Below, in pieces: positions 687 through 35,956 of a stretch of 64,000 nt of DNA. The position numbers and the translations under genes were made by a program. The DNA is taken from the IMG/VR virus record IMGVR_UViG_3300044213_000107, positions 196,724-260,723 of that record; one strand, given 5' to 3'. Every line of letters starts with the position of its first letter. Position 1 is the first letter of the stretch. Under the pieces are notes generated by a model, which saw only the letters and a list, made by a program, of their open reading frames with translations, was not told the DNA's origin and ran no database searches.

Positions 687-2169
687 TTTGCTTGTGCTCT
701 AAATATTTTTGCTCTAATCCTTCGATCTCTAATAATTTTTCATTTTGTCGGTTGATTTCAGAATAATACCCATATTCCTGCATTACTTCAACAAATCTTT
801 TCCATCTGTTTACTCTAACATCAAATGTATTGTTTACAAATTGTGTGCTAGTCCAGAAAAAATCGCCCCACTGGTCATGCCTATTATGTTCAAGACCGTA
901 TTCATCTGCATATCGTTGCATGAACCCGCTTCCATTTGTTAGCACCATTGGCAAAGATAAAAATACTTTTATCATATTGTTAGTTGTTAAGTGGGCATGA
1001 GTTTTAAGTAAATCGATACTTTGTTGGAAATCATCTTCCGTTTCGGTGGGATATCCTACAAACATTAACCATACTTGTTTTATACCTTTATCAAAACAAT
1101 TTTCAGCAAACCAAGTTATATCTTCATTACTGAATTTCTTCTTCATATCGTTACGAACTTTTTCACTACCCGACTCTATGCCTACTTTAAACAATTTCGC
1201 TCCGGCAGTTGATGCTAGTTTAAAATCTGATTCAGGCATGGATATTTTAGATCGACAAATGGCATAGCCAGAATATTCTATTCTATTGGGAATTTCTTCA
1301 GTTAATACCGTATTCATTAAACGATAATTTGTGATACTCCCATTCACAAGATTGTCAGTAAACTCAAACTTATTAATACCATATTTAGAATGTGTTTCGA
1401 TAATTTCACGTGCTATATCATTACCTTTTCTGTAGACGAATTTTGGCCAAGACGACTGCACATCGCAAAATGTACACTCTCTGACACATCCTTTACTGCC
1501 AGTAACCGGTATAGTTAAATTTTTATTTTTGTAACTTGGATACAATGAAAAATTATATCCTTCCCATGAAGGTGCAGGTGTGTTACTAAGTGCCTCTGCA
1601 GATACAGGAGGTGCAGTGTGTATTCCTTTTTTCTTATTTTGGATGACAGAAATCAAATCATTTTCCGCATCCCCACGATACACAGAATCTATCGGAAGAT
1701 AATCCATGAAATAATTAGCATAATTAATTCCACTGATTCGTTCGTTGTTATCTAGACCTCTGCCACCTATCATTATGTAACTGTTAGGCGATATCTCTCG
1801 AACTATAGTGGATAAAGGTACAACAAAATCTAAACTTTGGCTAGAAAATACAGACAATAAAATTGTATCCGGATTAAAATTTTTTATTTGTTGTTTAACA
1901 GCTTTTCTAAGCCATTTTAAAATTTTTAAAATATTAATGCTATTTGCCGGTCTGTACCCTCTTATGGCAAACATATCTACTATTATATTCCATTGATCTG
2001 CAAATTCGCTAAACAAATCAATATTTAGGTCCCAAACTTTACTATTGTATCCATTATGTTTTAAAATGCCGTTTATAACTGCAGGGCCGTATGGAACATC
2101 TCCGAAACTTTCTATTCCTGTATTAACAACTCTTACTGGAACTACTATTGTAAGGACATTTTTATTCAT
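637..2169 (-). CDS. B12-binding domain radical SAM protein (class B methyltransferase-like)
   Basis: CxxxCxxC motif (CVRECTFC), N-terminal PYGPAVI..IL cobalamin-binding-like region, GIESGSEKVR, GYPTETEDDF. Confidence 0.88.
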   Translation of the reverse strand: MNKNVLTIVVPVRVVNTGIESFGDVPYGPAVINGILKHNGYNSKVWDLNIDLFSEFADQWNIIVDMFAIRGYRPANSINILKILKWLRKAVKQQIKNFNPDTILLSVFSSQSLDFVVPLSTIVREISPNSYIMIGGRGLDNNERISGINYANYFMDYLPIDSVYRGDAENDLISVIQNKKKGIHTAPPVSAEALSNTPAPSWEGYNFSLYPSYKNKNLTIPVTGSKGCVRECTFCDVQSSWPKFVYRKGNDIAREIIETHSKYGINKFEFTDNLVNGSITNYRLMNTVLTEEIPNRIEYSGYAICRSKISMPESDFKLASTAGAKLFKVGIESGSEKVRNDMKKKFSNEDITWFAENCFDKGIKQVWLMFVGYPTETEDDFQQSIDLLKTHAHLTTNNMIKVFLSLPMVLTNGSGFMQRYADEYGLEHNRHDQWGDFFWTSTQFVNNTFDVRVNRWKRFVEVMQEYGYYSEINRQNEKLLEIEGLEQKYLEHKQNDKKVIPIVATPFNVY

Positions 2170-2213
2170 AGTAATATTTAGTAGACTAAACCAACCCAGT
2201 ATACTATCTTATA

Positions 2214-2252
2214 CCAGCATCTGTAAAATGGTGCGCTTGGAGGGACTTGAAC
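2214..2252 (-). repeat. 39-bp direct repeat copy 2
   Basis: Matches 175-213; includes the 3' end of the intact tRNA-Ile2. Confidence 0.9.
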
Positions 2253-2305
2253 CCCCGACCAAGCGATTATGAGTCGCCTGCTCTGACCAACTGAGCTACA
2301 AGCGC
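2229..2305 (-). tRNA. tRNA-Ile2(CAU), lysidine type
   Basis: Anticodon arm GGCGACTCATAATCGCTT as in enterobacterial ileX; CCA. Confidence 0.8.
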
Positions 2306-2311
2306 ATTAAC

Positions 2312-2397
2312 TGGTGCGACTGGCCGGAATCGAACCGGCACGGGAAAATCCCGGCAGATTTTAAGTCTGCTGCGGCTACCGATTACGCCACAGTCGC
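2312..2397 (-). tRNA. tRNA-Leu(UAA)
   Basis: Loop CTTAAAA, long variable arm, CCA. Confidence 0.92.
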
Positions 2398-2403
2398 TTA
2401 TCC

Positions 2404-2479
2404 TGGTGCCGGAGAAAGGAGTCGAACCCTCGACCTTCGCATTACAAGTGCGCTGCTCTACCAACTGAGCTACTCCGGC
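2404..2479 (-). tRNA. tRNA-Thr(UGU)
   Basis: Loop CTTGTAA, canonical D and T arms. Confidence 0.93.
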
Positions 2480-2489
2480 TAAAACTTTT

Positions 2490-2582
2490 TGGCGGAGCGG
2501 GAGGGATTCGAACCCTCGATACAGTTCATCACCGTATGACACCTTAGCAGGGTGCTGACTTCAGCCGCTCATCCACCGCTCC
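2490..2582 (-). tRNA. tRNA-Ser(GCU)
   Basis: Loop CTGCTAA, long variable arm, G discriminator. Confidence 0.92.
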
Positions 2583-2588
2583 AAATCC

Positions 2589-2664
2589 TGGTGGTCAGAA
2601 GAGCACTCGAAGCTCCACATTCATCCTTATGAGGGATGCTCTCTTCCTCTTAAGATATCTGACC
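2589..2664 (-). tRNA. tRNA-Met(CAU), probably elongator, atypical T-stem
   Basis: CATCC-CTCATAA-GGATG; T arm GGAGC-TTCGAGT-GCTCT. Confidence 0.8.
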
Positions 2665-2755
2665 ATATAAAAACACACTCTTATCAATATCCCAGCGGTC
2701 GACTCGGTTTAACAGGGCCCAACGTAGAGGGTCGGGCGAATGTGTTTTTATATGG
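2663..2755 (-). ncRNA. unassigned ~93-nt RNA closed by a 15-bp stem
   Basis: CCATATAAAAACACA ... TGTGTTTTTATATGG inverted repeat around a GC-rich core, between tRNA units. Confidence 0.55.
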
Positions 2756-2790
2756 TAGGAGCACGGGGATTTGAACCCTGAACCTATCAA
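2753..2790 (-). pseudogene. orphan tRNA 3' half (3' anticodon-stem strand, T arm, acceptor strand, CCA)
   Basis: Minus strand TTGATAGGTTCAGGGTTCAAATCCCCGTGCTCCTACCA; the HNH ORF lies where the 5' half would be. Confidence 0.75.
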
Positions 2791-3362
2791 TGACTGAGTA
2801 GTCGTTTTGCCCTGGCGTGGCTAGCACCCTTGTCAGGCAACCCAACACTTCTCAATGCTTCTGAAATAGTATTATGTTTCTTAACAGCCTCTAATAATAC
2901 TTCATCCGGAACAATTCTTTTTTTGTTATTTCTTCCTCGCCAAGTCTTAGTTTTTGAATGACAATTAGGACAAATACATTCTAAATTAGATCGGTCATTA
3001 TTTTTTGTATCACCGTCTTTATGCTCTAATTCTAAAACAATAGGATCACCCATCCATTCTGAAATTCCACAATGGTTACACTTATGACCTTGCTCTTCTA
3101 ATACCCGTCGCTTTCTATTCTCGCTACCTAATTTTTCAAAAGGTGTGGATTGGTATTTCTCTAATGCCCAAGCTGTTGTCTTGGCACTTCGTAATCTTAT
3201 TTCCTCGGTTGTAATTGGAGTTTTTCTAGTCCAACGACCGGCATTAGCAATACTTTTCTTCTTTTTGCTTTCTTCAGTAAACACTCTACTATTTGAACAT
3301 TTTCTAGAACAGAATGTTCCAGGCTTAGTATGTGCTGTATTACATTTAGGACAATTTTTCAT
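2787..3362 (-). CDS. HNH homing endonuclease with N-terminal Zn-finger
   Basis: CxxC..FCSRKC, then CNHC...LELEHKDGDTKNNDRSNLECICPNCH. Confidence 0.9.
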   Translation of the reverse strand: MKNCPKCNTAHTKPGTFCSRKCSNSRVFTEESKKKKSIANAGRWTRKTPITTEEIRLRSAKTTAWALEKYQSTPFEKLGSENRKRRVLEEQGHKCNHCGISEWMGDPIVLELEHKDGDTKNNDRSNLECICPNCHSKTKTWRGRNNKKRIVPDEVLLEAVKKHNTISEALRSVGLPDKGASHARAKRLLSH

Positions 3363-3365
3363 AAT

Positions 3366-3410
3366 ATTGAACTCTTACTTGTTATACTTTATTTATACTT
3401 AAAGTTCAAT
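3366..3410 (-). promoter_or_regulatory. late promoter TATAAATA inside an RBS-sequestering hairpin (HNH gene)
   Basis: ATTGAACT/AGTTCAAT arms flank TATAAATA at 3390-3397. Confidence 0.7.
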
Positions 3411-3426
3411 TTTATCAAAAATCAGT

Positions 3427-3500
3427 TGGTAGGCCCGGAGGGTACTGACCCCTCTTTTACGGATTAAAAGTCCGTTACTTCACCTTAAAGTTTCAAGCCC
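3427..3500 (-). tRNA. tRNA-Lys(UUU), non-canonical
   Basis: ACGGA-CTTTTAA-TCCGT; A8 instead of U8; T-loop GTCAGTA. Confidence 0.8.
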
Positions 3501-3505
3501 GTATG

Positions 3506-3580
3506 TGGTCCTTGCTCAGAGAATCGAACTCTGTTAGTCCGGGTAAGAGCCGGATACTTCGCCAGCAAAGTTTAGCAAGG
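3506..3580 (-). tRNA. tRNA-Lys(CUU)
   Basis: TCCGG-CTCTTAC-CCGGA; same A8 and ACTT/AAGT D-stem as its neighbour. Confidence 0.85.
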
Positions 3581-3589
3581 ATGGTTTGT

Positions 3590-3639
3590 ATTAACGAGTT
3601 CTTTAATGTCTTACAAACATATTAAAGAGTTCTTTAATG
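3590..3639. repeat. two 19-nt near-palindromic direct repeats
   Basis: ATTAACGAGTTCTTTAATG (3590-3608) and ATTAAAGAGTTCTTTAATG (3621-3639). Confidence 0.75.
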
Positions 3640-3676
3640 TGCCATCCCAGGACCAATACGGGGTCTTAGGATGACA

Positions 3677-3697
3677 CTACTGTTTACCTTGTTTCAT
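3677..3697 (-). CDS. six-codon leader ORF MKQGKQ
   Basis: AAAGGAA RBS, ATG AAA CAA GGT AAA CAG TAG, followed immediately by a 15-bp hairpin (3640-3676). Confidence 0.5.
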   Translation of the reverse strand: MKQGKQ

Positions 3698-3724
3698 GTC
3701 AAATTCCTTTGTGTTAAAAATGCT

Positions 3725-3753
3725 ATTATACAACTATCACAGCCAGTTGTCAA
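3725..3753 (-). promoter_or_regulatory. consensus sigma70 promoter
   Basis: TTGACA-N17-TATAAT. Confidence 0.85.
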
Positions 3754-3761
3754 CTGTTTTT

Positions 3762-3836
3762 TGGTACCCGGTGCTGGAATTGAACCAGCGACCCTTGCGT
3801 TATCAGCACAATGCTCTACCCCTGAGCTAACCGGGT
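3762..3836 (-). tRNA. tRNA-Ile(GAU)
   Basis: Loop CTGATAA. Confidence 0.92.
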
Positions 3837-3854
3837 ATTTTAATAAATATGTGT

Positions 3855-4034
3855 ATGATCTCTGAAGAAATTGAAAACTCTTGGAAATACTTGTATAGAT
3901 TCGTAGACGAATCCTACAAACCAAAATCATTTTGGTGTACACCCAGCGAGTTCAAACTTGAAGAACTGCCACAAATTGGTACCTCCGGAGAGACTCGAAC
4001 TCCCGACTCTTTCGTTCGTAGCGAAATACTCTAA
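3855..4034 (+). CDS. small hypothetical or remnant ORF running antisense into tRNA-Arg
   Basis: TAAATA-N5-ATG start; 3' third overlaps the tRNA. Confidence 0.35.
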   Translation: MISEEIENSWKYLYRFVDESYKPKSFWCTPSEFKLEELPQIGTSGETRTPDSFVRSEIL

Positions 4035-4053
4035 TCCACTGAGTTACGGAGGC
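3977..4053 (-). tRNA. tRNA-Arg(ACG)
   Basis: TTTCG-CTACGAA-CGAAA. Confidence 0.92.
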
Positions 4054-4056
4054 ATA

Positions 4057-4131
4057 TGGGGTGCGATACGAGAATCGAACTCGCGATAGCGGAATCACAA
4101 CCCGCGGTTTTGCCACTAAACTAATCACACC
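4057..4131 (-). tRNA. tRNA-His(GUG)
   Basis: Loop TTGTGAT, G-1:C73. Confidence 0.92.
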
Positions 4132-4165
4132 ATATCAATAAATACTTGCAGGTACCAAGATAAGT

Positions 4166-4744
4166 ATGGAACACAATTTAAATCTACAATATACACAAAT
4201 ACGTGATTATGTATTTGCATTATCTATACAATTTCCTTACTCCGACGAAGAAATTTTATCTGCAGCAAATACCGAGATTCTTGAACGATGGGTTGGTCCC
4301 GGTGATAGGTACCGAACAAATTCTCCACAATCTAAAATATTAAAAGATATATTTGAAATATTTAAAGATCCTGCGATATTTAAACAACAAATATTAGATA
4401 CGTTATACGCCACTGAAAAATACAAATATTTCTGGATTCGCAGCAAACAAGATTTGTTTACATCTTCAAGATTAAGTGTCGCACTCTACAAAGATTCTGC
4501 CAAATATTATTTAAAAAATCACCTGGATCCAAGAGACGTTATTGTATCAGGAATGTATTATCTCACAAAGTCAGATTTACAATATACAACAATCTACACT
4601 TCGGAAAATAATGATAATCCAATACAACTACTACCCAGTCAATACCAAGGTTGGATGTTAGCCAACACTGAAAATAGTTGGCACGATGGCAGAAATGAAG
4701 ATTCTGTTGATAGGATTGCCATTTATTATGATTTGTATCTATAA
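4166..4744 (+). CDS. 2OG-Fe(II) oxygenase family protein
   Basis: HxD (NHLD) ... SWHDG ... R facial-triad pattern. Confidence 0.7.
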   Translation: MEHNLNLQYTQIRDYVFALSIQFPYSDEEILSAANTEILERWVGPGDRYRTNSPQSKILKDIFEIFKDPAIFKQQILDTLYATEKYKYFWIRSKQDLFTSSRLSVALYKDSAKYYLKNHLDPRDVIVSGMYYLTKSDLQYTTIYTSENNDNPIQLLPSQYQGWMLANTENSWHDGRNEDSVDRIAIYYDLYL

Positions 4745-4746
4745 CT

Positions 4747-4820
4747 TGGCGACCCATGAAGGAATCGAACCTCCGTCCTTAGTTTTGGAGACTAGTACAC
4801 TACCATTGTGCTAATGGGCC
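4747..4820 (-). tRNA. tRNA-Trp(CCA)
   Basis: Loop CTCCAAA. Confidence 0.92.
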
Positions 4821-4824
4821 AAAT

Positions 4825-4910
4825 TGGTGGAAGTCCAGGGACTCGAACCCCGTATGCCGTAAGACGTCGGATTTACAGTCCGATGCAGTAACCTGTTCTG
4901 CTCGACTTCC
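4825..4910 (-). tRNA. tRNA-Tyr(GUA)
   Basis: Loop CTGTAAA, variable arm. Confidence 0.92.
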
Positions 4911-4916
4911 TTTATG

Positions 4917-5001
4917 TGGTGCGGATGGTGAGACTCGAACTCACACACCTTACGGTAATGGCTTCTAAGACCATCTCGGCTACCAGTTACGACACATCCG
5001 C
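4917..5001 (-). tRNA. tRNA-Leu(UAG)
   Basis: Loop CTTAGAA, variable arm. Confidence 0.92.
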
Positions 5002-5008
5002 AAAAACT

Positions 5009-5082
5009 TGGAGCGGGATAGGAGAATCGAACTCCTAACTAAACCTTGGCAAGGTTTCGTTTGACCATTAAACTAATCCCGC
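5009..5082 (-). tRNA. tRNA-Gly(GCC)
   Basis: AAACC-TTGCCAA-GGTTT, U discriminator. Confidence 0.92.
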
Positions 5083-5095
5083 AACTCCGAAAACA

Positions 5096-5171
5096 TGGCT
5101 GTCTAGGCAGGGATCGAACCTACGACAGGGTGATTAACAGTCACCTGCTCTACCAACTGAGCTACTAGACA
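5096..5171 (-). tRNA. tRNA-Asn(GUU)
   Basis: Loop CTGTTAA. Confidence 0.92.
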
Positions 5172-5183
5172 ATATTTATACTC

Positions 5184-5257
5184 TGGTGCCTCGTGACAGA
5201 ATCGAACTGCCGTCTGCACCGTGTAAGGATGCGGCCCTACCATTAGACGAACGAGGC
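5184..5257 (-). tRNA. tRNA-Val(UAC)
   Basis: Loop CTTACAC. Confidence 0.9.
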
Positions 5258-5329
5258 GAAATTTGGCGCCGATTTTTGTCATTTTAACTGAGGCTAACGA
5301 GCACTCCCTCAGATTAGTTGCAACTTATT

Positions 5330-5403
5330 TGGTGGAGAAGGAGAGAATCGAACTCTCAATTGAAGCTTGCAAAGCTACCGTTATCCCATTTAACTACATC
5401 CCC
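5330..5403 (-). tRNA. tRNA-Ala(UGC)
   Basis: Loop TTTGCAA, G3:U70. Confidence 0.88.
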
Positions 5404-5407
5404 AAAA

Positions 5408-5557
5408 TTATTCTTTAGTTTGTTCTTTGTGTTCTAGTAGTTTTTGTTGATATTGATCTTCAGTTAAACCATGCCAACCACAACACTTACCGTCTGGGCT
5501 ACGGCCACAACCGCATTTACCAATGTCTTCTGCATTTTCTTGTACTCTCATTTGCAT
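5408..5557 (-). CDS. 49-aa CDGSH-like (2Fe-2S or Zn) mini-protein, absent from the ORF track
   Basis: AAAGGAA RBS; MQMRVQENAEDIGKCGCGRSPDGKCCGWHGLTEDQYQQKLLEHKEQTKE. Confidence 0.7.
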   Translation of the reverse strand: MQMRVQENAEDIGKCGCGRSPDGKCCGWHGLTEDQYQQKLLEHKEQTKE

Positions 5558-5577
5558 GCATTTCCTTTATTAAAAAA

Positions 5578-5654
5578 TGGTCCGTGTGACACGATTCGAA
5601 CATGCGACCACCTGGTCCCAAACCAGGAGCTCTACCAGGCTGAGCTACACACGG
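5578..5654 (-). tRNA. tRNA-Pro(UGG)
   Basis: CCTGG-TTTGGGA-CCAGG. Confidence 0.92.
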
Positions 5655-5659
5655 AAAAC

Positions 5660-5734
5660 TGGATGCGGGAGACGGAATTGCACCGCCGATCTTCAGGTTA
5701 TGAGCCTGATGAGTTACTACTTCTCCATCCCGCG
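5660..5734 (-). tRNA. tRNA-fMet(CAU), initiator-like
   Basis: C1:A72 mismatch, loop CTCATAA. Confidence 0.8.
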
Positions 5735-5742
5735 ATAAACAA

Positions 5743-5816
5743 TGGTAAGGGAACTAGGAATCGAACCTAGAATAGCAGAATCAAAATCTGTTGTGATACC
5801 ATTTCACTATTCCCCA
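5743..5816 (-). tRNA. tRNA-Gln(UUG)
   Basis: Loop TTTTGAT. Confidence 0.88.
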
Positions 5817-5822
5817 ACGATG

Positions 5823-5898
5823 TGGTACTCGGTAGGGAATTCGAATCCCTGTTCACGCCGTGAAAGGGCGTTGTCCTAGGCCTCTAGACGAACCGAGC
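5823..5898 (-). tRNA. tRNA-Glu(UUC)
   Basis: ACGCC-CTTTCAC-GGCGT. Confidence 0.92.
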
Positions 5899-5907
5899 AT
5901 ACTTGTT

Positions 5908-5986
5908 TGGCGACTTGTAGGGGATTTGAACCCCTGATCTCTACCGTGACAGGGTAGCGCATTAAGCCAGACTATGCTAACAAGCC
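5908..5986 (-). tRNA. tRNA-Asp(GUC)
   Basis: CTACC-CTGTCAC-GGTAG. Confidence 0.92.
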
Positions 5987-5991
5987 AAATT

Positions 5992-6229
5992 CTCTATATG
6001 TAAACATACCTAAGGAACTCTTGAACAATATGGACTCTGCCGGCACCACGGGTTCGTCTCCCGATTGGGTTCATTCGTTATTACAGCCTACATGATCTGT
6101 CAGTACACTCGTACAGTATCTTGCGATCCGTAACTACCTTCATGTGCACTGCATACTCCGCCCCGGCGAGCTGTCCCCTTTGCAAGCACCTAACAGTATA
6201 GGTAACCTTTTGTACGTTTACATATAGAG
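5992..6229 (-). ncRNA. unassigned ~238-nt structured RNA
   Basis: 14-bp terminal stem CTCTATATGTAAAC/GTTTACATATAGAG, GC-rich interior, ATC-GCAA-GAT tetraloop hairpin. Confidence 0.6.
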
Positions 6230-6263
6230 GCTATTGTTTACAATAGCTTATATGTGATTAACT

Positions 6264-6433
6264 TTTTAAAGAACACAGTTAATTGCTTAACAAGCATGTA
6301 TTGTAACACCTTTTTGGACAATTAGCAAGTGTTTTTTACTGCTGTTGCTGATTTGCTACAACGTTTGTTCGATAACAAACTAGTTAATTTCTTAACTTGT
6401 ATCTATTATAGCACCAAATAATAACCCGCACAA
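6264..6433 (-). promoter_or_regulatory. tandem sigma70 promoters, each with a GNRA hairpin, then a boxA-like site
   Basis: TTGTGC-N17-TATAAT (6433-6405); TTGCTA-N17-TACAAT (6328-6300); GTTAA-GAAA/GCAA-TTAAC; TGTTCTTTAAAA (6275-6264). Confidence 0.7.
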
Positions 6434-6466
6434 TCTTCGGGTTTTGGGTGTTGTTTTTTAATAACA

Positions 6467-6489
6467 TGGAGTAGGTGACAGGACTTGAA
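6467..6489 (-). pseudogene. orphan tRNA 3' fragment (T-loop to UCCA)
   Basis: Minus strand TTCAAGTCCTGTCACCTACTCCA, truncated at the T-loop next to the HNH-like gene. Confidence 0.7.
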
Positions 6490-6524
6490 ATATATATTAT
6501 TTCGTTTTGAACATAAATAATAAC

Positions 6525-7310
6525 ATGAACACCTGTCAACAATGTACTTCATTATTTGCTCAAACTCCTGGAACGTACGGTAAATTTTGCTCTGTATCCT
6601 GTAGTAGTAAGTTTAATAATAAAATTAGACGCCAACAGACTACGGAAAACTATTTATTAAATCCAAAAGTTTGTAAAAATTGCAATTCAATCATAAATTA
6701 TTCTCAAAGAAAAAGTAATATTTTTTGTAGCCGATCCTGCGCCGCTGTGTTTAATAATGCCAAAAAAGATTGGACTAATATTAAAACTGGGCCGACACCT
6801 AAACAAAAGGCACCGAAATTAAAAAGAAAAGCGAGAACTAATACTATCCCAGATGCAGACGGACCATACACTATTATATACCTATGCACTTGCAAATTTA
6901 CTGGAAAAAAATGGTACTCCCCAACAGTTAAGACCATACACCCATCAACAATATCAACTAAAAAATTGTATTCTTATCAATGTAGATTTAACTTTGGTAT
7001 TAAGTCGTACCCTGAATGGTTTGCTTATGCATCAAATTTAATAAACACTAACGGCTGGTACTCAGCCTCTAATAGAGGTAATAATTTATCTGGATGTTCT
7101 CGTGATCATTTGTATTCAGTATCGGATGGATACAAAAACAATATAGATCCTAAAATAATATCTCATCCTGCAAACTGTGAGATAATTCCGCACAGGAAAA
7201 ATCAGAGTAAAAACAAGACTTCGTCGATTACATTAGAAGAACTAAAAGAAAGAATCAAAAAATTTAATCAAAAATATTTGGAGATGCCAGATGGGGTCGA
7301 GCCATCCTAG
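6525..7310 (+). CDS. Zn-finger repeat / HNH-like homing endonuclease
   Basis: Two CxxC..FCSxSC motifs; C-terminal SRDH...HPANCEIIPHRKNQSK; start moved to the ATG after TAAATA-N5. Confidence 0.75.
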   Translation: MNTCQQCTSLFAQTPGTYGKFCSVSCSSKFNNKIRRQQTTENYLLNPKVCKNCNSIINYSQRKSNIFCSRSCAAVFNNAKKDWTNIKTGPTPKQKAPKLKRKARTNTIPDADGPYTIIYLCTCKFTGKKWYSPTVKTIHPSTISTKKLYSYQCRFNFGIKSYPEWFAYASNLINTNGWYSASNRGNNLSGCSRDHLYSVSDGYKNNIDPKIISHPANCEIIPHRKNQSKNKTSSITLEELKERIKKFNQKYLEMPDGVEPS

Positions 7311-7352
7311 AAAGTTTTGCAGGCTTCCACCTAACCGCTCGGACATGGCATC
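7279..7352 (-). tRNA. tRNA-Cys(GCA), divergent T-loop
   Basis: Loop CTGCAAA, U discriminator; overlapped antisense by the HNH-like ORF end. Confidence 0.8.
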
Positions 7353-7402
7353 GTAATATAAAAATTTTAGTGTGGTAGTTCGGCGCACACCTACATAATA
7401 AA

Positions 7403-7495
7403 TGGTGGAAGCGGTGAGACTCGAACTCACACACCCTGTTGAGAGCCCTCAGTTTTCAAGACTGCTGCCGCTATGCCGATTCGGCTAACGCTTCC
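7403..7495 (-). tRNA. tRNA-Ser(UGA)
   Basis: Loop CTTGAAA, long variable arm. Confidence 0.9.
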
Positions 7496-7497
7496 AA

Positions 7498-8679
7498 TTA
7501 TACTGGGAATACTTCCCTAAAATTTGTTTTTCTTATACGATCTAACATACCAATATATTCGTTAAATGTATTGATTAAGTTAGGATTGTGCACAGCATTT
7601 TCCAATGAGTTTATTGTAAATTTAATCGCTGATATATAGTTATATCGCAGATAATGCGTTAAAGGAATCTGAGATTTTAGTTCTTGCAAATCGAGAATAA
7701 ATTGATTTCTTTGTGCATCTGTTAACACTTCTATGTCTAAATATGGTTTAGACATTAATCTACCAACATTCACAGCATATGAGTTATCAACACAATATTG
7801 AATTAATGGTATCAACGCCCAGAAACTTGTATACTGTAGTGTATGGCCAATGGTAATAGGATTATTAGGCCATGTAGGATTAGGACGTGTGGCTAATTTT
7901 TTAATATTAGCATCTACGGTTGCCCACTCACTACCATATCTAACATATTCTGTATGTTGCTCGGTACCTTCTAAACTTACAACTATTGCAACAGATTTAA
8001 ATTTTGAAATACAATCGTATACTTCATCTGTTAATGTTGTACCGTTTGTGGTAACTGTTAAATTTAATTGCTCCGGATGCGGAATGCTTTTTAACATTGC
8101 AATAGCATTAGGAGTTATAAGTGGCTCGCCACCTGTTAAAAAAATATGTTCAACATTTTCTAATAGTCGAGGCTCCAGCTCTTGATATTCATCTGTTTCA
8201 AACCAATTTCTTTTTTGTATAAATTGATCATCATGAGTTAAGTGAACAAAATTTTTATATTGTTCTCTATTCATTTTTACTTCAGTTTCTATACTAGAAC
8301 TGCAATAAGGATTACACATTATACATTTTAAATTACAGTGATTGCCAAATTCAACATGTAAATGTTTTATGCCATAAGATTTATCTGGTGAAAAATCTTG
8401 TCTAATAAAATTTTCAAATGTGCGATTACCATTTATTCTGTACGACGATGATCCATTGTCTTCTTCGTCCCAACAACGACTACAACCTTCATGTCTTTGG
8501 CCATTGTCTAGTTCTTGACTAATTTTAATAACTTTTGTTTGTCGCCAACGATCAAATTGATCATATTTATCAACCAAATTACCATCTTTTATTTGATAAT
8601 TACAACAAGGTGTAAGTGTGCCGTCTGTGCGAATATTAACACCAATATGCGAATGTATACAAAATGTTTCTTGATTCAT
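7498..8679 (-). CDS. radical SAM protein with N-terminal SPASM/twitch-like Cys cluster
   Basis: CNLKCIMC, TGGEPL, TTNGT; N-terminal C..PCC..CxxC; start moved to MNQETFC. Confidence 0.88.
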   Translation of the reverse strand: MNQETFCIHSHIGVNIRTDGTLTPCCNYQIKDGNLVDKYDQFDRWRQTKVIKISQELDNGQRHEGCSRCWDEEDNGSSSYRINGNRTFENFIRQDFSPDKSYGIKHLHVEFGNHCNLKCIMCNPYCSSSIETEVKMNREQYKNFVHLTHDDQFIQKRNWFETDEYQELEPRLLENVEHIFLTGGEPLITPNAIAMLKSIPHPEQLNLTVTTNGTTLTDEVYDCISKFKSVAIVVSLEGTEQHTEYVRYGSEWATVDANIKKLATRPNPTWPNNPITIGHTLQYTSFWALIPLIQYCVDNSYAVNVGRLMSKPYLDIEVLTDAQRNQFILDLQELKSQIPLTHYLRYNYISAIKFTINSLENAVHNPNLINTFNEYIGMLDRIRKTNFREVFPV

Positions 8680-8709
8680 AGTGATATTTATATGCAACAT
8701 ATATTGTAA

Positions 8710-8804
8710 TATTCTAAAACTGATTAGTTTCGGGAGATGTCCGTCCTATACAACCGGCCCTTTCAATGAGCCTGTAAAATATTCTTCTACTCAGTTTTAG
8801 AATA
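8710..8804 (-). ncRNA. unassigned ~95-nt RNA closed by a 14-bp stem
   Basis: TATTCTAAAACTGA ... TCAGTTTTAGAATA. Confidence 0.5.
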
Positions 8805-28493: not shown

Positions 28494-28501
28494 ATCCGTA
28501 T

Positions 28502-28936
28502 TTAGCGGCCAGTACCTTGATGGAAAATATCATCTTCGCTGACAATTCTAAATACAAGACCTTGATTTCGACACCAAGCTCTGGCTGCTTCCCATTTGGC
28601 CATATTAAGTACAACTGCAGCCTGGTCCCTGACCGATTTGGCATTTTCAAGTGTAATTTCTTTTTTGGGTTTTATCTCAATTACTTCTGCGTGTTTAGTA
28701 CCCGACTTATCAACATATACAATTAAAAAATCCGGTACATATATTGTGGCTTTACCTGTTAATGGATTACGATAGTTTACATGCACCGCTTCACTGGCCC
28801 ACTGTAGTATAGCAGGATTGTTATCACAAAATTGCATAAACACAAATTCCCAACTACTACGGTATGTAGGAGTTTTGTTGCCTACATACTTTTCCGGGAA
28901 TTTCATTTGGAATTTGCCTTGGGCGTATTTACTCAT
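28502..28936 (-). CDS. head completion nuclease (T4 gp4-like)
   Basis: PEKYVG, YRSSWE, YVPDF, IEIKPKK, NMAKWEAA. Confidence 0.9.
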   Translation of the reverse strand: MSKYAQGKFQMKFPEKYVGNKTPTYRSSWEFVFMQFCDNNPAILQWASEAVHVNYRNPLTGKATIYVPDFLIVYVDKSGTKHAEVIEIKPKKEITLENAKSVRDQAAVVLNMAKWEAARAWCRNQGLVFRIVSEDDIFHQGTGR

Positions 28937-29332: not shown

Positions 29333-30820
29333 TTATTCTGGTGCAGCATTTTGATCTTGGCTATTTCCAGCCGCTTGATTTAATTGACCAGATTGTGTGT
29401 CTGTATTTTCTGCTGCGGCTGCGTCTGCTGCGGCCTGGGCTGCGGCAGCTTGATCTTGATTGTATGCATCTAATACTGCCTGTTGATTTTCTTCAGCAGT
29501 TGCAGCAGTTGGATAATTGCTTTCGGCATTCGCTAATGCTTGTTCAGCATCAGTTTGTGTAGGTAAGTTTGTTGTACCAGTGACTGCACCAGATTTATCA
29601 ATTGTAGTTAATTTGCCAAGACTTGATGCTTTACGTAATACACCTGTTGTTATTGCTGCGGTAATTGCTACACCTGCTGCACCTGTTGGTGCAGCTAATG
29701 CGCCAATAGATAAACCTGCAGCAGCTAACGCTCCACCAACTGCAGATCCATTGGTTGTAATACCGCCTGTTGCAATAGGACTATTAACTGTCGGCAATCC
29801 AAACGCTGGAGTTCCTGCTAGATTTCCAGAGTTAGGAACAAACACAGTATTAAGCGGATTATTACCAGAAATAATATTGCGCCCTAGCGCAGCAAGACTA
29901 CCTGCTGCAATAGTTGTTAAATTTGTATTTTTTAATATTGTTCCGGCGTTTATTGCTTTTAATCCTGCGGCCAGATAATTTTGATTATCGAGATCGTCGG
30001 TTATTTCTGTAGCAGATTGTACCAGTCCGCCAGGGCCAAATAAACTAGCAGTTCCACCGCCTAGAGGACTTAGTGGACTTGGTGTTTTATCATAATATGT
30101 TGTAGCAAAGCCATCGACTGCAGGACCAACTGTTCCTCTACCGTATAGCACACCTTCGTAGGCGATAGTCATTGAGTGTTCTAGTGTACCAGTTCCATTG
30201 CTGCTGTTATGCGTGCCATGTCTAAATGAAGTTATATACGGATTAACCAGTATGTATTCGGTAAAAGACTTTTGATGCAGACTATATATTTTTATAGCCT
30301 TGATAATATTAACGCCGCCGGGATTATCTGTGGAACCACTTGGTTGATAGCCAAATTGATTTAATTGGCCAGATCTGTCTCCGTATTTGGTCGAGGTATA
30401 GTATGTAGGATTAGGACTACCATTTTGTTGACCAATATCTGCGTCTCTATAATAATATCTATAATACAAGTTCCAGAAATTTAAAACACTTTCTGCAGAG
30501 TCATCGTGAAAAGTAATATTAACTGGGTCATATTTTATTTTTGATTGTATTACCGTTGGACGATTATAACTATTCATAGTTTTTGCTTCAACTGTGAATT
30601 TAGGCAAATCTATATTTTTAACCATTAACCCAGTTACTAATGCATCATCAGCGGCCAATCCGTAGTGTGTATCTAAACTAAAACTAACGTGATATAACCA
30701 AGCAGATTTAGGCGAATGTTCATAGTTATTACCAACATACAATCTAGAAGCATGTTGATAATCGTGAATACCACTGTGTGTAGTAAATCCTTGTAACAGT
30801 AAATCTGCAACTGAAGCCAT
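29333..30820 (-). CDS. tail tube-like / baseplate tube initiator protein
   Basis: IDLPKF...YDPVNITFHDD tube-fold signature; adjacent to the tube gene. Confidence 0.65.
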   Translation of the reverse strand: MASVADLLLQGFTTHSGIHDYQHASRLYVGNNYEHSPKSAWLYHVSFSLDTHYGLAADDALVTGLMVKNIDLPKFTVEAKTMNSYNRPTVIQSKIKYDPVNITFHDDSAESVLNFWNLYYRYYYRDADIGQQNGSPNPTYYTSTKYGDRSGQLNQFGYQPSGSTDNPGGVNIIKAIKIYSLHQKSFTEYILVNPYITSFRHGTHNSSNGTGTLEHSMTIAYEGVLYGRGTVGPAVDGFATTYYDKTPSPLSPLGGGTASLFGPGGLVQSATEITDDLDNQNYLAAGLKAINAGTILKNTNLTTIAAGSLAALGRNIISGNNPLNTVFVPNSGNLAGTPAFGLPTVNSPIATGGITTNGSAVGGALAAAGLSIGALAAPTGAAGVAITAAITTGVLRKASSLGKLTTIDKSGAVTGTTNLPTQTDAEQALANAESNYPTAATAEENQQAVLDAYNQDQAAAAQAAADAAAAENTDTQSGQLNQAAGNSQDQNAAPE

Positions 30821-30853
30821 TTATTATAAAACCTTATAATATTATTTATTCGT

Positions 30854-30900: not shown

Positions 30901-31536
30901 TTAGCCCGATACACTTTGACCCAAAGTTCTTTGGATAGCAGTACCAACACCAACTGCACCACCGCCAGGACCTGCAGTCTGTTCAGCATTATCAAACTTA
31001 ATTGTTAATGCAACTGTTGCTGGCTCGCTGGTAGCATAGTTCATTTCGCCCCAGTTTACTTCTTGGATGAAACAACCATATAGTTCCCAAGTTTCTAAAG
31101 TATTAGCTGCATTAGCACCATTACCACCATCGAGCATTTCAAAAGTTAAACCAAACTTATAGTCAATGCCAGAAGCTGCACTAGATTGTTCTGCAAAATC
31201 AAATTGCTTTTGAATTTGTTCGCCAACTAAATTACTAATGTTATTGTTTACATCGTCGCGTAAATTAACTGTAACTGCTTGCCATTCCGGTTTGCCAATT
31301 AAATTAATTTTACTATTGTAGATATCAATAACAAAAGGATTAAAGTTAATATTAGGACGAGTAATATCTACTACCTGTTTAGTTAACTCCATCACGTTAG
31401 TTGTGTTAACTCCAAATCCATTGAATGTTGCTCTAAAACGATATTTTAATTTTGGCATTAACAGACCTTGGCTAGAAGCACTTTGTCCGCCTCCCCCTAA
31501 TGGTACTGTAATATTTCTTAATGATGCTGATGCCAT
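30901..31536 (-). CDS. tail tube protein (gp19-like)
   Basis: PKLKYRF, GKPEWQAVTVNLRDD, TWELYGCF, TIKFDNA. Confidence 0.88.
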   Translation of the reverse strand: MASASLRNITVPLGGGGQSASSQGLLMPKLKYRFRATFNGFGVNTTNVMELTKQVVDITRPNINFNPFVIDIYNSKINLIGKPEWQAVTVNLRDDVNNNISNLVGEQIQKQFDFAEQSSAASGIDYKFGLTFEMLDGGNGANAANTLETWELYGCFIQEVNWGEMNYATSEPATVALTIKFDNAEQTAGPGGGAVGVGTAIQRTLGQSVSG

Positions 31537-31616
31537 TTTATTCTCCTGATACTGTATTTAGTATTTTTATTATGGGACTAATGGGCAGCATCACCGCCCA
31601 TTAAGTACCTATATTA

Positions 31617-34600
31617 TTATATACCTGCTTTGATATCGCCTGGATTCTTCAAGCGAATTGGAATGTAAATAAACTCAACCGATTTCATTGGTTCGATAGC
31701 AATATCGACCCAAAGTTCGTTACGTTCAATACGTGTTGGTGTGTTGTTTGAATCATCACAGATAACAACATAATCGTAAATACCACGTTTAGCAATCAAG
31801 TCATTAATAGCACCATTGATGATACTTCTGATTTGATTACGTGTGATCTTGTCATTTGGTTCAAACAAGAACGCATCGCCTACACGTGCTAGGATAGTAC
31901 GAATATAATTAACTAAACGTGCTACATTTACACGATCCAAACTTGTTGCAGTTGGGTTACGAGTAATTTGTCCCCAGACAACCAATCCAATGCCAGGAAT
32001 CTGTGCAATAGGATTAATCTTGTTAGAATATAACAAATCACGTGTTCCTTGGTTAACCCCGTTTAGAGTAAACTCTTCGGTTGTACTGTTGATATAACCA
32101 AGATTTGTTGCATTATCTACTAAACCACGGCGTGTACCAGCTGGTGCAAACCACTGATAACTTACATTGTCATTATGTATAAATGTGCGCAATGCTACAT
32201 GGCTTGGAGGAACAACAATTGTGTTGCCAGACAAGTCTACAGTTTCTGCACTTGGATAGTATACGCCCAAGTATGGGTCAGCAGTTGCCAATCCATCACC
32301 ATTTGTATTATTACTCCACTCACTGATACTTACCGCATCAGGTGCTAAACGGAATGGTGTATCACCAATAACGAATGCAGTATTGGCACGATCGTTATTT
32401 AATGCCACCATTTCTGGAATCAATTCTGGATATCCAGGAGCAACAATCAAATTAAACTGATATTGTTCTTCACGAACTGTTGTGTTTGTACTTACTGCTG
32501 CAGCCAATGCTTTAACAACCATATTGCGTTGTGCTTTACGACCTGCCCACATAGCACCGTTGTCTTGCAATCCACTAGCAGATACCCACGCATCAGTTAC
32601 CGTTGGCAAAGATATATTAGGATAACTTTCAGCATTAAAATAATCGCTGTGGAATTTCTTAATATTATATCCGCTGCGGCGTGTGTTAAACAACAATGTA
32701 CCACGTGGATACAATCTTGCATCTGGTGCATCTAAATCCAAATAATTGCTAAACAACAATCCTGTTGCGCCATCACTGATAGTTGGCAATGCATCGTTAA
32801 TAACATCAGCAGTACCAGCGGTATCCCAACGTGCATCAGCAAATACAATACCGTTTTGTGTAATTTGGTCTGTGTTATCTATAGCAACCCAAGCTTTGCC
32901 ATTGTAACGACTTAGTTTTGGCCAATTTTCTAGATCGCTAGTATCTAACCAAATATCTCCTGCAGCAACTGCAGTTAACCCATCACTATGATATTTAGGT
33001 GCTGCACCGGCACTTGCAATAACACCCATTGGATCTGTTTCTGTTAAATTGTATCCGCGTGCATCGCTAGATACATTTTGGTAACCTTTCCAACCGTTAT
33101 CATTGATCATAATATCAACATCTAGTGCAGATCCATAATACCATACTGTCCCATCTGCAGGGTTTGTATGTGGTTCTTTATCACTAACGGTATAAGTTAA
33201 ATTAGACCAGTTAGAAATTCTATAGTAAGGTGTTGTAACCGTTAAGTTAGCTATCGGATTTGTTCTAGAAGCTCCATTTGGGAACAACGAACTACCAGCT
33301 GCAGTTCCACTTCCGTTGTCTATTAATAAAATCTCTCCGCCTGCAGTATGTGTATACACAATAGCCCCAGAAGCCGAAATATCTATATTAAAATTAGGTA
33401 TTGATAAATTTTTAAGTCCAATAACAAAATTTGTAACGCTAACATTATTTGTGCCTACACTACCCGGAACCGTGTATGTGTAAACAGAAGGTAGTGCTTG
33501 CGCCGGTTGACTTACTTTAATGGTGATTACATCTCCGCCATTGAATACTGTTGCAGCATTTGTTGGTGCACGGCCTGTTACAACTGTTTTGCCAACTGCA
33601 GTTCTTACTTTTGGTGTAAGTCCACTTGACAAATTGCCATAATTAGGATTTGTTTTTAAGAATATTGTTCCTGCCGGAATACCTAAACCACCGTTAATCG
33701 GGTCTAATCCATAATCTGCAGACGTTTCGCTGTCATATACTGGGGCAGGAACTAAATTCCATGTGTTAGATGATGCATTGTATTTTTTCAAAACAATATT
33801 AAGACCATTACCGGTTGCACTTGTTTTTAAGAACACCGATCCAGATGGTCTTGGCACAGAATCCGAACTTCTCCAACTTGGTATCTGTGCAAATGTACCT
33901 TCTGTATAAGTACAACAAAAATACGTTGTTCCGCTAGTAAGTCCTAATGTACCTAGTGGCGAAGTATTTTGTGCTCCAGAGCCTTGGCGAACATTATCGA
34001 CAATATATATTCCGCCATCTACTATATAACCTGTAGATGAACCAGTAGCGTCAATTAATATCATATTTGATCCGCCTAATGCGGTACTTAAGGTAATGTG
34101 AGTACTATCAACAATACTTGTTACATAATATGGTGTTCCGGTAGCAACACCGCTAGAAATTGTTGAACTAGCCAAATTACCAATAGCACCATTAATATAC
34201 AATTTTGTACCTACAGACAAGTTACTAGTTGATGACACAGTTACATTATTTGTACCTTGCTGTGTAGCAGTAATACTAATACGTGCAGCTGAATTTCCTG
34301 CTCCACTTATTGAATTTCTATTAGAATAAAATTCTATTGATTTTCCATCACTGCTTAATGAAGCTATGATACCTGCTGCACTTAACGCACTAGCATATGT
34401 ATTAATTTTTGATGCTATTCCAGCTATATTTACATTGTTAGCGGTATCACCTAGTACAACATTAATACCATTAACAAGAATACTACATGCAGGATTATTA
34501 TTTGCAGAATAAAAAATTGGTTGATTTGCAGCAAAAGAGTTTGTAGATGCTGCTGGACTAGATTGTTCCCATGCTAATGATTCTACTGAGACCCATGCGC

Positions 34601-35237
34601 CAAAATTATTTTTATGATAAATCAATGCTGAACTATTTGGATTTAAAGTTGCACTTTCAGCAAATACTACTGCATAATCGCCTAATGCACCAACTGTAGA
34701 AATTGGATACCATGTGCCAAATTGATATGTTAATAATGCAGGATCTGTAATTATAATTGGTGTTTGCAGATTAAATTGTCCCGCAACCGCATCCCATTCG
34801 TAAATACCCCAATTAGAATCGGCAGTATCTAACCATACGATTCCGTCTGCTACTGTACCTGTTGGACGAACTGCAGTCGGTGTTAATTCATTAAGATCAA
34901 TATCTGCACGAATTGCATATAACAAATTGCTTTGGCCAAGAGCACTGTACGCAGCAATTAAACCATACTCGTTTCTTTCGTCGCCGTGTAAAGGTGTTCC
35001 TGCTGCGCTTTGTTCAAACGTTGGGTATCCCATTGCAGTAATAAGATCTCGTTGACTTGTGAAACTTAATAGTTTACCGGCGGTTGCTTGAGTGGTGTCT
35101 GAAGCCAATGCGCCAGCGGGATTTGTTTTGTCTTGAGCGGTTGCCAACAATACTAAAGCTGTTGTGCCCACTGCGCCTGGTACATACTGGCTTTCGTCAG
35201 TAATTGTAATTTGTGAACCTGGTGATACTAATGCCAT
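31617..35237 (-). CDS. tail sheath protein (gp18-like) with large insertions
   Basis: MALVSPG..I...DES; WFAPAGTRRG; RVNVARL; FEPND; C-terminal EFIYI. Confidence 0.93.
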   Translation of the reverse strand: MALVSPGSQITITDESQYVPGAVGTTALVLLATAQDKTNPAGALASDTTQATAGKLLSFTSQRDLITAMGYPTFEQSAAGTPLHGDERNEYGLIAAYSALGQSNLLYAIRADIDLNELTPTAVRPTGTVADGIVWLDTADSNWGIYEWDAVAGQFNLQTPIIITDPALLTYQFGTWYPISTVGALGDYAVVFAESATLNPNSSALIYHKNNFGAWVSVESLAWEQSSPAASTNSFAANQPIFYSANNNPACSILVNGINVVLGDTANNVNIAGIASKINTYASALSAAGIIASLSSDGKSIEFYSNRNSISGAGNSAARISITATQQGTNNVTVSSTSNLSVGTKLYINGAIGNLASSTISSGVATGTPYYVTSIVDSTHITLSTALGGSNMILIDATGSSTGYIVDGGIYIVDNVRQGSGAQNTSPLGTLGLTSGTTYFCCTYTEGTFAQIPSWRSSDSVPRPSGSVFLKTSATGNGLNIVLKKYNASSNTWNLVPAPVYDSETSADYGLDPINGGLGIPAGTIFLKTNPNYGNLSSGLTPKVRTAVGKTVVTGRAPTNAATVFNGGDVITIKVSQPAQALPSVYTYTVPGSVGTNNVSVTNFVIGLKNLSIPNFNIDISASGAIVYTHTAGGEILLIDNGSGTAAGSSLFPNGASRTNPIANLTVTTPYYRISNWSNLTYTVSDKEPHTNPADGTVWYYGSALDVDIMINDNGWKGYQNVSSDARGYNLTETDPMGVIASAGAAPKYHSDGLTAVAAGDIWLDTSDLENWPKLSRYNGKAWVAIDNTDQITQNGIVFADARWDTAGTADVINDALPTISDGATGLLFSNYLDLDAPDARLYPRGTLLFNTRRSGYNIKKFHSDYFNAESYPNISLPTVTDAWVSASGLQDNGAMWAGRKAQRNMVVKALAAAVSTNTTVREEQYQFNLIVAPGYPELIPEMVALNNDRANTAFVIGDTPFRLAPDAVSISEWSNNTNGDGLATADPYLGVYYPSAETVDLSGNTIVVPPSHVALRTFIHNDNVSYQWFAPAGTRRGLVDNATNLGYINSTTEEFTLNGVNQGTRDLLYSNKINPIAQIPGIGLVVWGQITRNPTATSLDRVNVARLVNYIRTILARVGDAFLFEPNDKITRNQIRSIINGAINDLIAKRGIYDYVVICDDSNNTPTRIERNELWVDIAIEPMKSVEFIYIPIRLKNPGDIKAGI

Positions 35238-35335
35238 TTTGTGATTCCTTTATAATACACTTTAACATATTTAGTTATATATAACTTTTTTTGGTTATTA
35301 GAGGTGCCTTTAAGAAAACCTTTATAAATATTTTT

Positions 35336-35956
35336 ATGAAAAAATACGCTGGATTTGTATACGAAACAACAAATGTCATAACAGGTATGAAATATATCGG
35401 GAGTTATATTGGCTTAGATACTGATATTTGTTTTGGTAATAGTAGATCTATAGAAAAAGATATTAAAAAATACGGGATAGAAAACTTTTCAAGAAGTATA
35501 TTAGAATATGTAAAATCAATTAATGTTCTAGCTGAAGCCGAGTCTGCGTGGCTTAAAAGCGTAAATGCTAAATCTAACCCAATGTATTTTAATCGCAGCA
35601 ATAAATCTTCGCAAAGAGAAGTTTGCGGTGCATGTAATACAAATCTAGTAGCAGTAAATTATGTCACTGCAAATAGAACATATTATAGAAAACTATGTTC
35701 AAGTTGTATTCGTAAAGGTAAAAAAATAAAACTCTCAGCACCTGCTTGGTTTAAGGCGGGATATAGGAAACGTGACAAATGTGAAAATTGTGGCTTCAAA
35801 GGCAAACACCTTGAACAACTTAGGGTGTTCTATATAGATGGCGATAAAGAAAACAATAACGCTTACAATTTAAGAACAATATGCTTAAACTGTCAAGTTG
35901 ATGCAGTTAAAAGTAAAACTCGTTGGTTACCTGCCGAAATTATAGCAGATTTTTAA
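35336..35956 (+). CDS. GIY-YIG domain fused to a Zn-finger/HNH-like domain
   Basis: GFVYETTN...KYIGS; CENCGF..IDGDKENNNAYNLRTICLNC; TATAAATA-N5-ATG start. Confidence 0.7.
   Translation: MKKYAGFVYETTNVITGMKYIGSYIGLDTDICFGNSRSIEKDIKKYGIENFSRSILEYVKSINVLAEAESAWLKSVNAKSNPMYFNRSNKSSQREVCGACNTNLVAVNYVTANRTYYRKLCSSCIRKGKKIKLSAPAWFKAGYRKRDKCENCGFKGKHLEQLRVFYIDGDKENNNAYNLRTICLNCQVDAVKSKTRWLPAEIIADF

Follow-up and report, generated by a model that had tools for sequence, protein, structure and literature searches.

The virus record IMGVR_UViG_3300044213_000107 of IMG/VR raises the question of what a short, recurrent unit does at the 5′ ends of a subset of its genes: the hexamer TAAATA, followed after only four or five nucleotides (N4 or N5) by an ATG, where no Shine–Dalgarno (SD) motif is present. 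The window analyzed here is a stretch of 64,000 nucleotides, bases 196,724–260,723 of this linear, 260,723-bp record, for which a completeness of 74% is estimated. A first-pass annotation of the window had proposed that TAAATA-N5-ATG is a T4-type late promoter that places the A of the ATG at the transcription start (+1). We favor, with a probability of roughly two in three, a TAAATA late promoter that exists in two configurations, from one of which the N4–N5 genes would be made as leaderless mRNAs.

The phage (G000 in our comparisons), an uncultivated freshwater jumbo phage, has a G+C content of ~38%, and 88% of its genes, which were called simply as longest open reading frames (ORFs), lie on the minus strand. 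A myovirus structural module lies in the window; its tail sheath shares ~40% identity with that of Pseudomonas phage PA5oct and matches those of Atu_ph07, GAP32 and other Rak2-like jumbo phages more weakly. Two complete relatives were used repeatedly for comparison: G006 (352,754 bp), which has 170 of 335 proteins in common with the phage at a median identity of 47%, and G013 (359,563 bp), which encodes a gp55-like sigma factor and has a median identity to the phage of 45%.

The window contains seven TAAATA-N5-ATG matches against 2.4 expected, a number reached in one of 100 shuffles, and the whole record contains 27, against four for the reversed-pattern control and 7.95 ± 2.5 (maximum 14) in first-order Markov simulations. 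The genome-wide histogram of raw TAAATA-to-ATG distances, which the first-pass annotation had suggested as a check, has the peak at five that it had anticipated (12, 27 and 10 matches at distances of 4, 5 and 6, over a background of ~4–5), together with a second hump at distances of 20–21. ATG is the only triplet strongly enriched at N5 (27 versus 5.0), with GTG found once and TTG three times. The same bimodality appears when the distance is counted from the first ATG of each ORF back to the nearest TAAATA, a procedure that carries no bias toward the motif: nine ORFs have N4, 15 have N5, two N6, three N7, one N10–15 and 45 N16–30.

At the six sites that had been listed initially, the TAAATA-N5-ATG sequence is exact. 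They lie at 2167–2180 (−), ahead of a 510-aa radical SAM/B12-binding-like gene (637–2169) whose upstream neighbor is 97 nt away; at 3844–3857 (+), within a tRNA cluster; at 6514–6527 (+), ahead of the gene for a 261-aa Cys-rich protein (6525–7310); at 8677–8690 (−), ahead of a 393-aa radical SAM/SPASM gene (7498–8679); at 28491–28504 (−), ahead of a 167-aa structural-module gene (27990–28493) orthologous to PA5oct gp283; and at 35325–35338 (+), ahead of the gene for a 206-aa GIY-YIG (SegE-like) homing endonuclease (35336–35956), which is oriented divergently to the tail sheath gene. The seventh match in the window, at 59883–59896 (+), opens a frame of just 12 codons and is non-genic. The near cases had also been described correctly: the site at 12718–12730 (−), before a 532-aa gene (11122–12720), has N4, and those at 22846–22861 (+) and 24114–24129 (−), before an HNH endonuclease gene (22859–23389) and a 124-aa gene (23742–24116), have N7, which in the HNH gene would leave a leader of 1–2 nt if the promoter is used. 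At 12718–12730 and 28491–28504, the preceding gene terminates at the TAA of the motif.

The distribution of TAAATA across the genome points to a signal in DNA. The non-coding 8% of the genome holds 99 of its 300 copies, and among the fifteen hexamers composed of four A and two T, TAAATA is the rarest overall, yet has the most intergenic copies. Inside genes it is depleted in the sense orientation (70 copies versus 140.7 in codon-shuffled genes, z = −6.3) and in the antisense orientation (83 versus 177.8, z = −7.3), in a comparison that gives ratios of 0.72–1.18 for control hexamers. Because avoidance on the antisense strand fits a DNA signal and not an RNA signal, TAAATA is taken to act at the DNA level. 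Several copies stand directly 3′ of hairpin-plus-T-run terminators. The flanking preferences, A or C before the hexamer and C or T after it ([A/C]TAAATA[C/T]), are common to the N4/N5 class and to the genes with longer leaders, and in both classes alike the 20 nt upstream of TAAATA contain no conserved column, so that no −35 element is evident.

The genes with N16–30 carry an SD (AAGGAG-like) in the leader and include, in the window, those for the tail sheath, the tail tube, a virion structural protein and a 2366-aa protein. Examples of leadered sites in the window, all on the minus strand, are those at 35238–35273 (tail sheath gene 31617–35237; TAAATA at 35268–35273, N30, SD AAGGA), 30821–30848 (tail tube gene 29333–30820; TAAATA at 30843–30848, N22), 31537–31560 (tail-tube-region gene 30901–31536; TAAATA at 31555–31560, N18, AGGAG in the leader), 37893–37918 (gene 36960–37892; TAAATA at 37913–37918, N20, SD GGAG) and 53108–53137 (the 2366-aa gene, 46007–53107; TAAATA at 53132–53137, N24, SD AGGAG). 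Across the leadered class the fifth position after the box is the most A-rich, and it is there that N4 places the A of the ATG.

These features resemble those of T4 late promoters, in which the box TATAAATA spans positions −13 to −6 and family variants at −13/−12 are documented (PMC2988020); the geometry quoted in the first-pass annotation therefore agrees with the literature, and by that geometry N5 would put the A of the ATG at +1. In the relatives CBB and GAP32, both of which have gp55-like sigmas, ATAAATA precedes structural genes (PMC5259590). The equation with the T4 motif holds only for the core, which is promoter-like and, as the motif searched for, invariant by definition: the full octamer is not enriched in the record (seven copies versus 9.35 expected), a caveat to the identification. 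TAAATA is probably a late-promoter core.

The second strand of evidence concerns the start codons. None of the N4/N5 starts in the record has an SD motif, so that TAAATA at these spacings and an SD are mutually exclusive; the statement that the initially listed starts lack an SD stands, for the near cases and the sigma70 cases (see below) as well. Among the 27 gene-level N4/N5 calls, 26 start with ATG, the exception being the PhoH gene g51968, in which a non-ATG codon, read as Val, follows TAAATA-N4; this gene, which has an SD-led ATG 12 codons downstream, was dropped from the leaderless class. GTG and TTG starts are not enriched at N4/N5, compared with ~15% among strong-SD genes. In most genes of the class an in-frame stop lies only 3–84 nt before the ATG, with no earlier start codon in between, and an alternative SD-plus-start within the next 60 codons exists in only three of the 27 genes, a frequency equal to background. 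Pfam domains begin 2–13 residues from the ATG in the family-17 glycosyltransferase (GT17), the metallophosphoesterase and one radical SAM protein, and all 54 orthologs of the gene at 28493 align from residue 1. On this evidence the N4/N5 ATGs are judged to be real starts. Compared with SD-led genes, the leaderless class shows slightly less structure and a higher A content over the first 40 nt of its genes, both effects being modest.

An N-terminal peptide of the form M-x(2-4)-[DE]-[IVL][IVL] (as in MKITDII and MRIKEII) occurs in seven of the 27 leaderless-class proteins versus 11 of 308 others. Its carriers (g26254, g92562, g111824, g93319, g67789, g133478 and g147657, and the products of the window genes at 24116 and 36960) are not paralogous by BLAST; the peptide may act as a capsid-targeting-like tag or as a propeptide, or it may reflect a constraint on AU-rich 5′ coding ends.

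A comparable arrangement exists at promoters of another type. Six near-consensus TTGACA-17-TATAAT (sigma70-type) promoters have an ATG at N6 or N7, four of them at genome positions 81026, 115194, 122497 and 193148. The two in the window are as the first-pass annotation had described them: TTGACG-17-TACAAT-N7-ATG at 9298–9336 (−), start at 9300, before a 41-codon ORF that is followed by a hairpin and T-run terminator, and TTGACT-17-TATAAT-N6-ATG at 39809–39846 (−), start at 39811, before an 83-aa gene (39560–39811). The remaining promoters of this kind have leaders of at least 18 nt, often a conserved leader of ~30 nt that begins with ATACACATA, so that here, too, the spacing is bimodal. These fusions are independent evidence for the putative use of leaderless messages in the phage system. 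The common ~30-nt leader, which starts with ATACACATA and ends in an SD, was seen at genome positions 74124, 75380, 94965, 134627 and 175958, among others, and the promoters that carry it presumably belong to the early region.

In the mechanism that we propose, host RNA polymerase, directed by a phage gp55-like sigma factor, would read TAAATA as the counterpart of positions −11 to −6 in TATAAATA, with no −35 element. In one configuration, at ~45 genes that include those for the tail sheath, the tail tube and virion proteins, TAAATA would act 16–30 nt before the start codon and translation would use the SD in the short leader. In the other, at ~25–27 genes, TAAATA lies 4–5 nt before the ATG with no SD, transcription would begin at, or within one base of, the A of the ATG, and the resulting leaderless mRNA would be translated through its 5′-terminal AUG. 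The six consensus sigma70 promoters, which are of the early type, would use a like fusion. We infer each component of this scheme (the start site, the late timing, the leaderless translation and the gp55-like sigma as reader) from sequence.

The arrangement is kept in orthologs at 37–89% protein identity. For the gene at 28493, for which 54 related loci were compared, orthologs at 40–77% identity have TAAATA or TAAGTA at N4/N5; more distant ones have either TAAATA at N23–25 with a leader, or an SD, and the sole intermediate spacing is N7 in one pair of loci. TAAGTA-N5-ATG takes the place of TAAATA-N5-ATG, at equal spacing, in one subgroup of these orthologs (L043–L057 and L072), and TAAGTA is a possible tolerated promoter variant. 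The G006 orthologs of g52814, g67789, g116832 and the window gene at 12720 keep N4/N5 at 37–51% identity, with N4 conserved at 12720 itself, and the window gene at 39879, leadered in the phage, has N6 in G006. The unit is also kept in two 85%-identical orthologs of the 6525–7310 gene (L095 and L096) and in a 66%-identical ortholog of the GIY-YIG gene (L074). No orthologs were found for the gene at 2169, that at 8679 has just 25%-identical relatives, without the motif, and a search with the 544-aa gene g92562 gave mostly domain-level matches in larger frames and was uninformative. In four DNA metagenomes, among the variants listed for 6800–12799, none falls inside 8677–8690 or 12718–12730 and all are flanking, an observation of little weight.

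The metallophosphoesterase gene g118620 provides the broadest comparison, with 78 orthologous loci at 79–89% identity that lie in 59 distinct upstream contexts. N4–N6 is kept in 62 of the 78 (23 N4, 34 N5 and five N6), the others having N7 (five), N8 (one), N11 (one), N20 (two) or no motif (seven), and no SD was detected at any of them except for a GGGG run in the two N20 loci. Two direct TGTAAY repeats, ~11 nt apart, lie 30–55 nt before the ATG of this gene in most of the loci (L218–L297) and in g118620 of the phage itself, and look like an operator for a gene-specific regulator. Eight large freshwater records that carry the metallophosphoesterase gene have 147 TAAATA-N5-ATG matches versus 34 for the control. 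In G013 the raw histogram gives 17 at N4 and 28 at N5 over a background of ~9, the first-ATG spacing is again bimodal, and TAAATA is depleted on both strands (z = −8.7 and −9.9).

The gp55-like family phrog_234 was found in all four of the 100%-complete clade records that were searched (G006 and G011–G013, the latter three, of 524, 367 and 360 kb, being the complete ones among the eight freshwater records) and in G016. It was also found, as gp55, in five cultured relatives, namely PA5oct, GAP32, Atu_ph07, SCTP-2 and a Vibrio relative. In G006 the gp55 gene sits in a segment without a counterpart in the phage record.

The leaderless class is mostly composed of accessory genes, encoding five radical SAM enzymes, an Fe/Mn superoxide dismutase, a GNAT acetyltransferase, an amidoligase, a LysM/chitinase-like protein, the metallophosphoesterase, the family-17 glycosyltransferase and the GIY-YIG homing endonuclease, with the HNH endonuclease carrying the N7 form. 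Such a set is in keeping with a unit that expresses add-on genes cheaply and at low output.

Several observations weigh against leaderless expression from a late promoter. No gp55 was found in the 74%-complete record with T4 gp55, phrog_234, phrog_12791 and the gp55-like proteins of relatives as queries; we read this as a gap in the record and not as absence, the G006 segment being consistent with the missing quarter. The five cultured gp55 carriers, and T4, show no excess of TAAATA-N5-ATG; since they have the sigma factor without the pattern, the fusion would be a trait of the freshwater clade and not of the promoter type. A run search found the phage in freshwater DNA metagenomes only, and the scheme presumes a host capable of leaderless translation. 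Both N4 and N5 are frequent, which means either that the choice of start site is flexible or that some mRNAs have a 1-nt leader or start with U. The initial listing treated all six sites as genes, and this probably does not hold for the one at 3855 (+), where the 59-codon frame overlaps tRNA-Arg (3977–4053) on the opposite strand. The assignment of the A of the ATG to +1 is thus backed by the avoidance on two strands, the bimodality, the lack of SD motifs, the ATG starts, the orthologs and the gp55-encoding relative, with the undetected gp55 and the site at 3855 on the other side. The notion of a portable cassette, functional in either orientation, found partial support: the accessory enzymes, the GIY-YIG gene and the 59 upstream contexts speak for it, but the excess of leaderless genes on the minority strand is not significant (7 of 40 versus 22 of 295, p = 0.06) and these genes are not less conserved than the leadered ones (a match in G006 for 14 of 29 versus 26 of 44).

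The tight junctions point in the same adverse direction and suggest a specific alternative. At 6–7 of the 27 sites, with a gap of 7–8 nt, the preceding gene ends on the TAA of the motif itself, and ~11 sites lie in junctions of 14 nt or less, where termination–reinitiation on read-through mRNA could supply the protein. Extended to the class, this would mean that a late promoter is present but that the N4–N5 proteins come mainly from read-through polycistronic mRNA by reinitiation or coupling, with the promoter serving downstream genes or starting a few bases off; the spread between N4 and N5, which leaves the A at no single fixed distance, would agree with that. Coupling is impossible, however, at the ~16 sites in gaps of 36 to >400 nt, behind terminators or divergent genes, and genes on the minority strand, among them that for the GIY-YIG protein at 35336, are not preceded by any gene of the same orientation. 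Moreover, ATA after a TAA stop would be rare by chance among 8-nt gaps, and the unit is kept across the 59 upstream contexts of the metallophosphoesterase gene. We consider read-through unlikely as the main source of these proteins, and overlap with stop codons was rejected as a general cause of the pattern, as it covers at most the 6–7 sites mentioned.

That the hexamer at −11 to −6 from the start is instead an RNA signal, an AU-rich, non-SD ribosome-binding element or S1 enhancer on mRNAs that start upstream, would agree with its occupying the SD position to the exclusion of an SD and with the phage encoding its own bS21. Such a signal should be avoided in the sense orientation only, and the antisense depletion is as strong as the sense depletion in both the phage and G013; it would also leave the recurrence of TAAATA 16–30 nt before SD-bearing structural genes, the copies directly behind terminators, the agreement of the spacing with T4 late-promoter geometry and the disuse of GTG and TTG without an explanation. 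The depletion on both strands led us to reject a ribosome-binding site, and we hold an RNA signal to be very improbable. Practically negligible is the possibility that the pattern simply follows from AT-richness or from the duplication of a few genes, despite the 38% G+C of the genome and the presence of several radical SAM paralogs in the class. The shuffles, the simulations (maximum 14 versus 27) and the reversed-pattern control (4 versus 27) reject chance and base composition; only one paralogous pair is detectable within the class, whose upstream regions are alike in the motif alone, which rejects duplication; and the pattern is replicated in genomes with ~45% protein identity. The preferred reading thus remains the late promoter in two configurations. 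A wider version of it, in which homing endonucleases and accessory enzymes are expressed throughout the clade, as the standard, from a 14-bp fusion of gp55-type promoter and AUG, structural genes keep SD leaders and bS21 helps ribosomes to accept the leaderless messages, is a decidedly doubtful extension.

The bS21 homolog (79 aa; G000:C1:124734–124973, minus strand, outside the window; L137; PF01165, 63 bits, E = 6e-18) may be relevant to SD-independent initiation. Its own gene has TAAATA 26 nt upstream and no clear SD, and G006 has no obvious copy.

Some further features of the region were recorded. The phage genome contains at least 13 radical SAM genes, of which 11, including the window gene 7498–8679, are radical SAM/SPASM-type paralogs; 637–2169 has a weak match to a B12-binding domain, and the other members of the set are g9505, g17931, g22502, g23635, g45164, g51879, g52814, g73434, g88595, g189495 and g221858. 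The 24 tRNA genes of the window lie at 25–7495, on the minus strand throughout, with small ORFs and radical SAM genes between them. The GIY-YIG and HNH homing endonuclease genes (35336–35956 and 22859–23389, both plus strand) are opposite-strand insertions in the structural module, and in PA5oct a different endonuclease adjoins the sheath gene. The intergenic region 8700–8955 (−), 5′ of the radical SAM gene, is more stably folded than shuffled sequences (z = −2.9) and, in four metagenomes, shows an unusually high summed contig depth with many contig breaks at 8829–8905. No significant Rfam match was found for the structured region 8600–9400, nor any tRNA match for 8700–8955; the latter stretch is possibly a small RNA element, either conserved or mobile. 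Beside it, two small ORFs, 9101–8955 (−; 49 codons) and 9300–9178 (−; 41 codons), are separated by a strong hairpin and T-run terminator at ~9110–9150; the former is SD-led, and the latter is the leaderless sigma70-type case described above.

A literature search returned no description of a start codon fused to a T4-type late promoter, and the arrangement probably represents a new form of leaderless expression in phages. Like T4 late promoters, the phage promoter would lack a −35 element and consist of one AT-rich box of the −10 type, followed by AT-rich sequence and placed before virion genes on either strand; T4 late promoters depend on gp55, gp33 and gp45 (PMC2988020), and the complete relatives of the phage encode a gp55-like sigma. 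Unlike in T4, only the TAAATA core of the octamer is conserved in the phage, and in about a third of its promoter-proximal genes the predicted +1 falls on the ATG, whereas the T4 genome has 10 N5 matches versus five for the control, which is no enrichment. CBB and GAP32, Rak2-like phages of the same broad group, share with the phage the ATAAATA motif before structural genes and the gp55-like sigma; gp33 and gp45 were not detected in them and no leaderless configuration was described (PMC5259590). In contrast to the phage, GAP32 has five TAAATA-N5-ATG matches versus eight for the control. For PA5oct, transcriptomics revealed sigma70-like promoters only.

The closest parallel in outcome comes from the Thermus phages phiYS40 and Lalka27a, whose promoters reportedly place the first base of the initiator codon at the 5′ end of the mRNA, late genes included (bioRxiv 10.64898/2026.04.20.719267, which cites the work on phiYS40). 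Most of their genes are leaderless, the late −10 element is TAGGGT and the hosts are Thermus, in which leaderless mRNAs are common. The phage differs in that ~8–10% of its genes (~1 in 12) would be leaderless, most of the others having a classical AAGGAG SD, and in that the promoter is of the T4 type. An isolated leaderless case is the lambda cI mRNA transcribed from PRM. Like lambda cI and the leaderless genes modeled by GeneMarkS-2 (PMC6028130), which have a −10 hexamer 6–7 nt before the ATG and no SD, the phage has no SD at these starts, and its six sigma70 units match that layout exactly. Those cases differ from the phage in being isolated genes, or host-wide in Actinobacteria, Deinococcus and archaea, and do not form a jumbo-phage late module. 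In the poxvirus late promoter, TAAATG, the initiator overlaps the start codon and the mRNAs gain a poly(A) leader. Like the phage unit, this element is very short and gives both starts; it belongs to a eukaryotic virus with another polymerase, and the likeness is one of analogy only.

If the reading is confirmed, gene calling in these huge phages must admit SD-less starts 4–5 nt after TAAATA, and the starts at 6525, 8679, 12720, 24116 and 35336 in the window would be revised. A T4-type late promoter would then double as a translation signal, forming a minimal 14-bp switch for an acquired gene in either orientation and, if true, a compact part for phage engineering. It would suggest a split between high-output structural genes, expressed with a leader and an SD, and low-output accessory enzymes and endonucleases, expressed leaderless, and would offer a testable connection to ribosomal protein genes, whose presence in large phages is unexplained.

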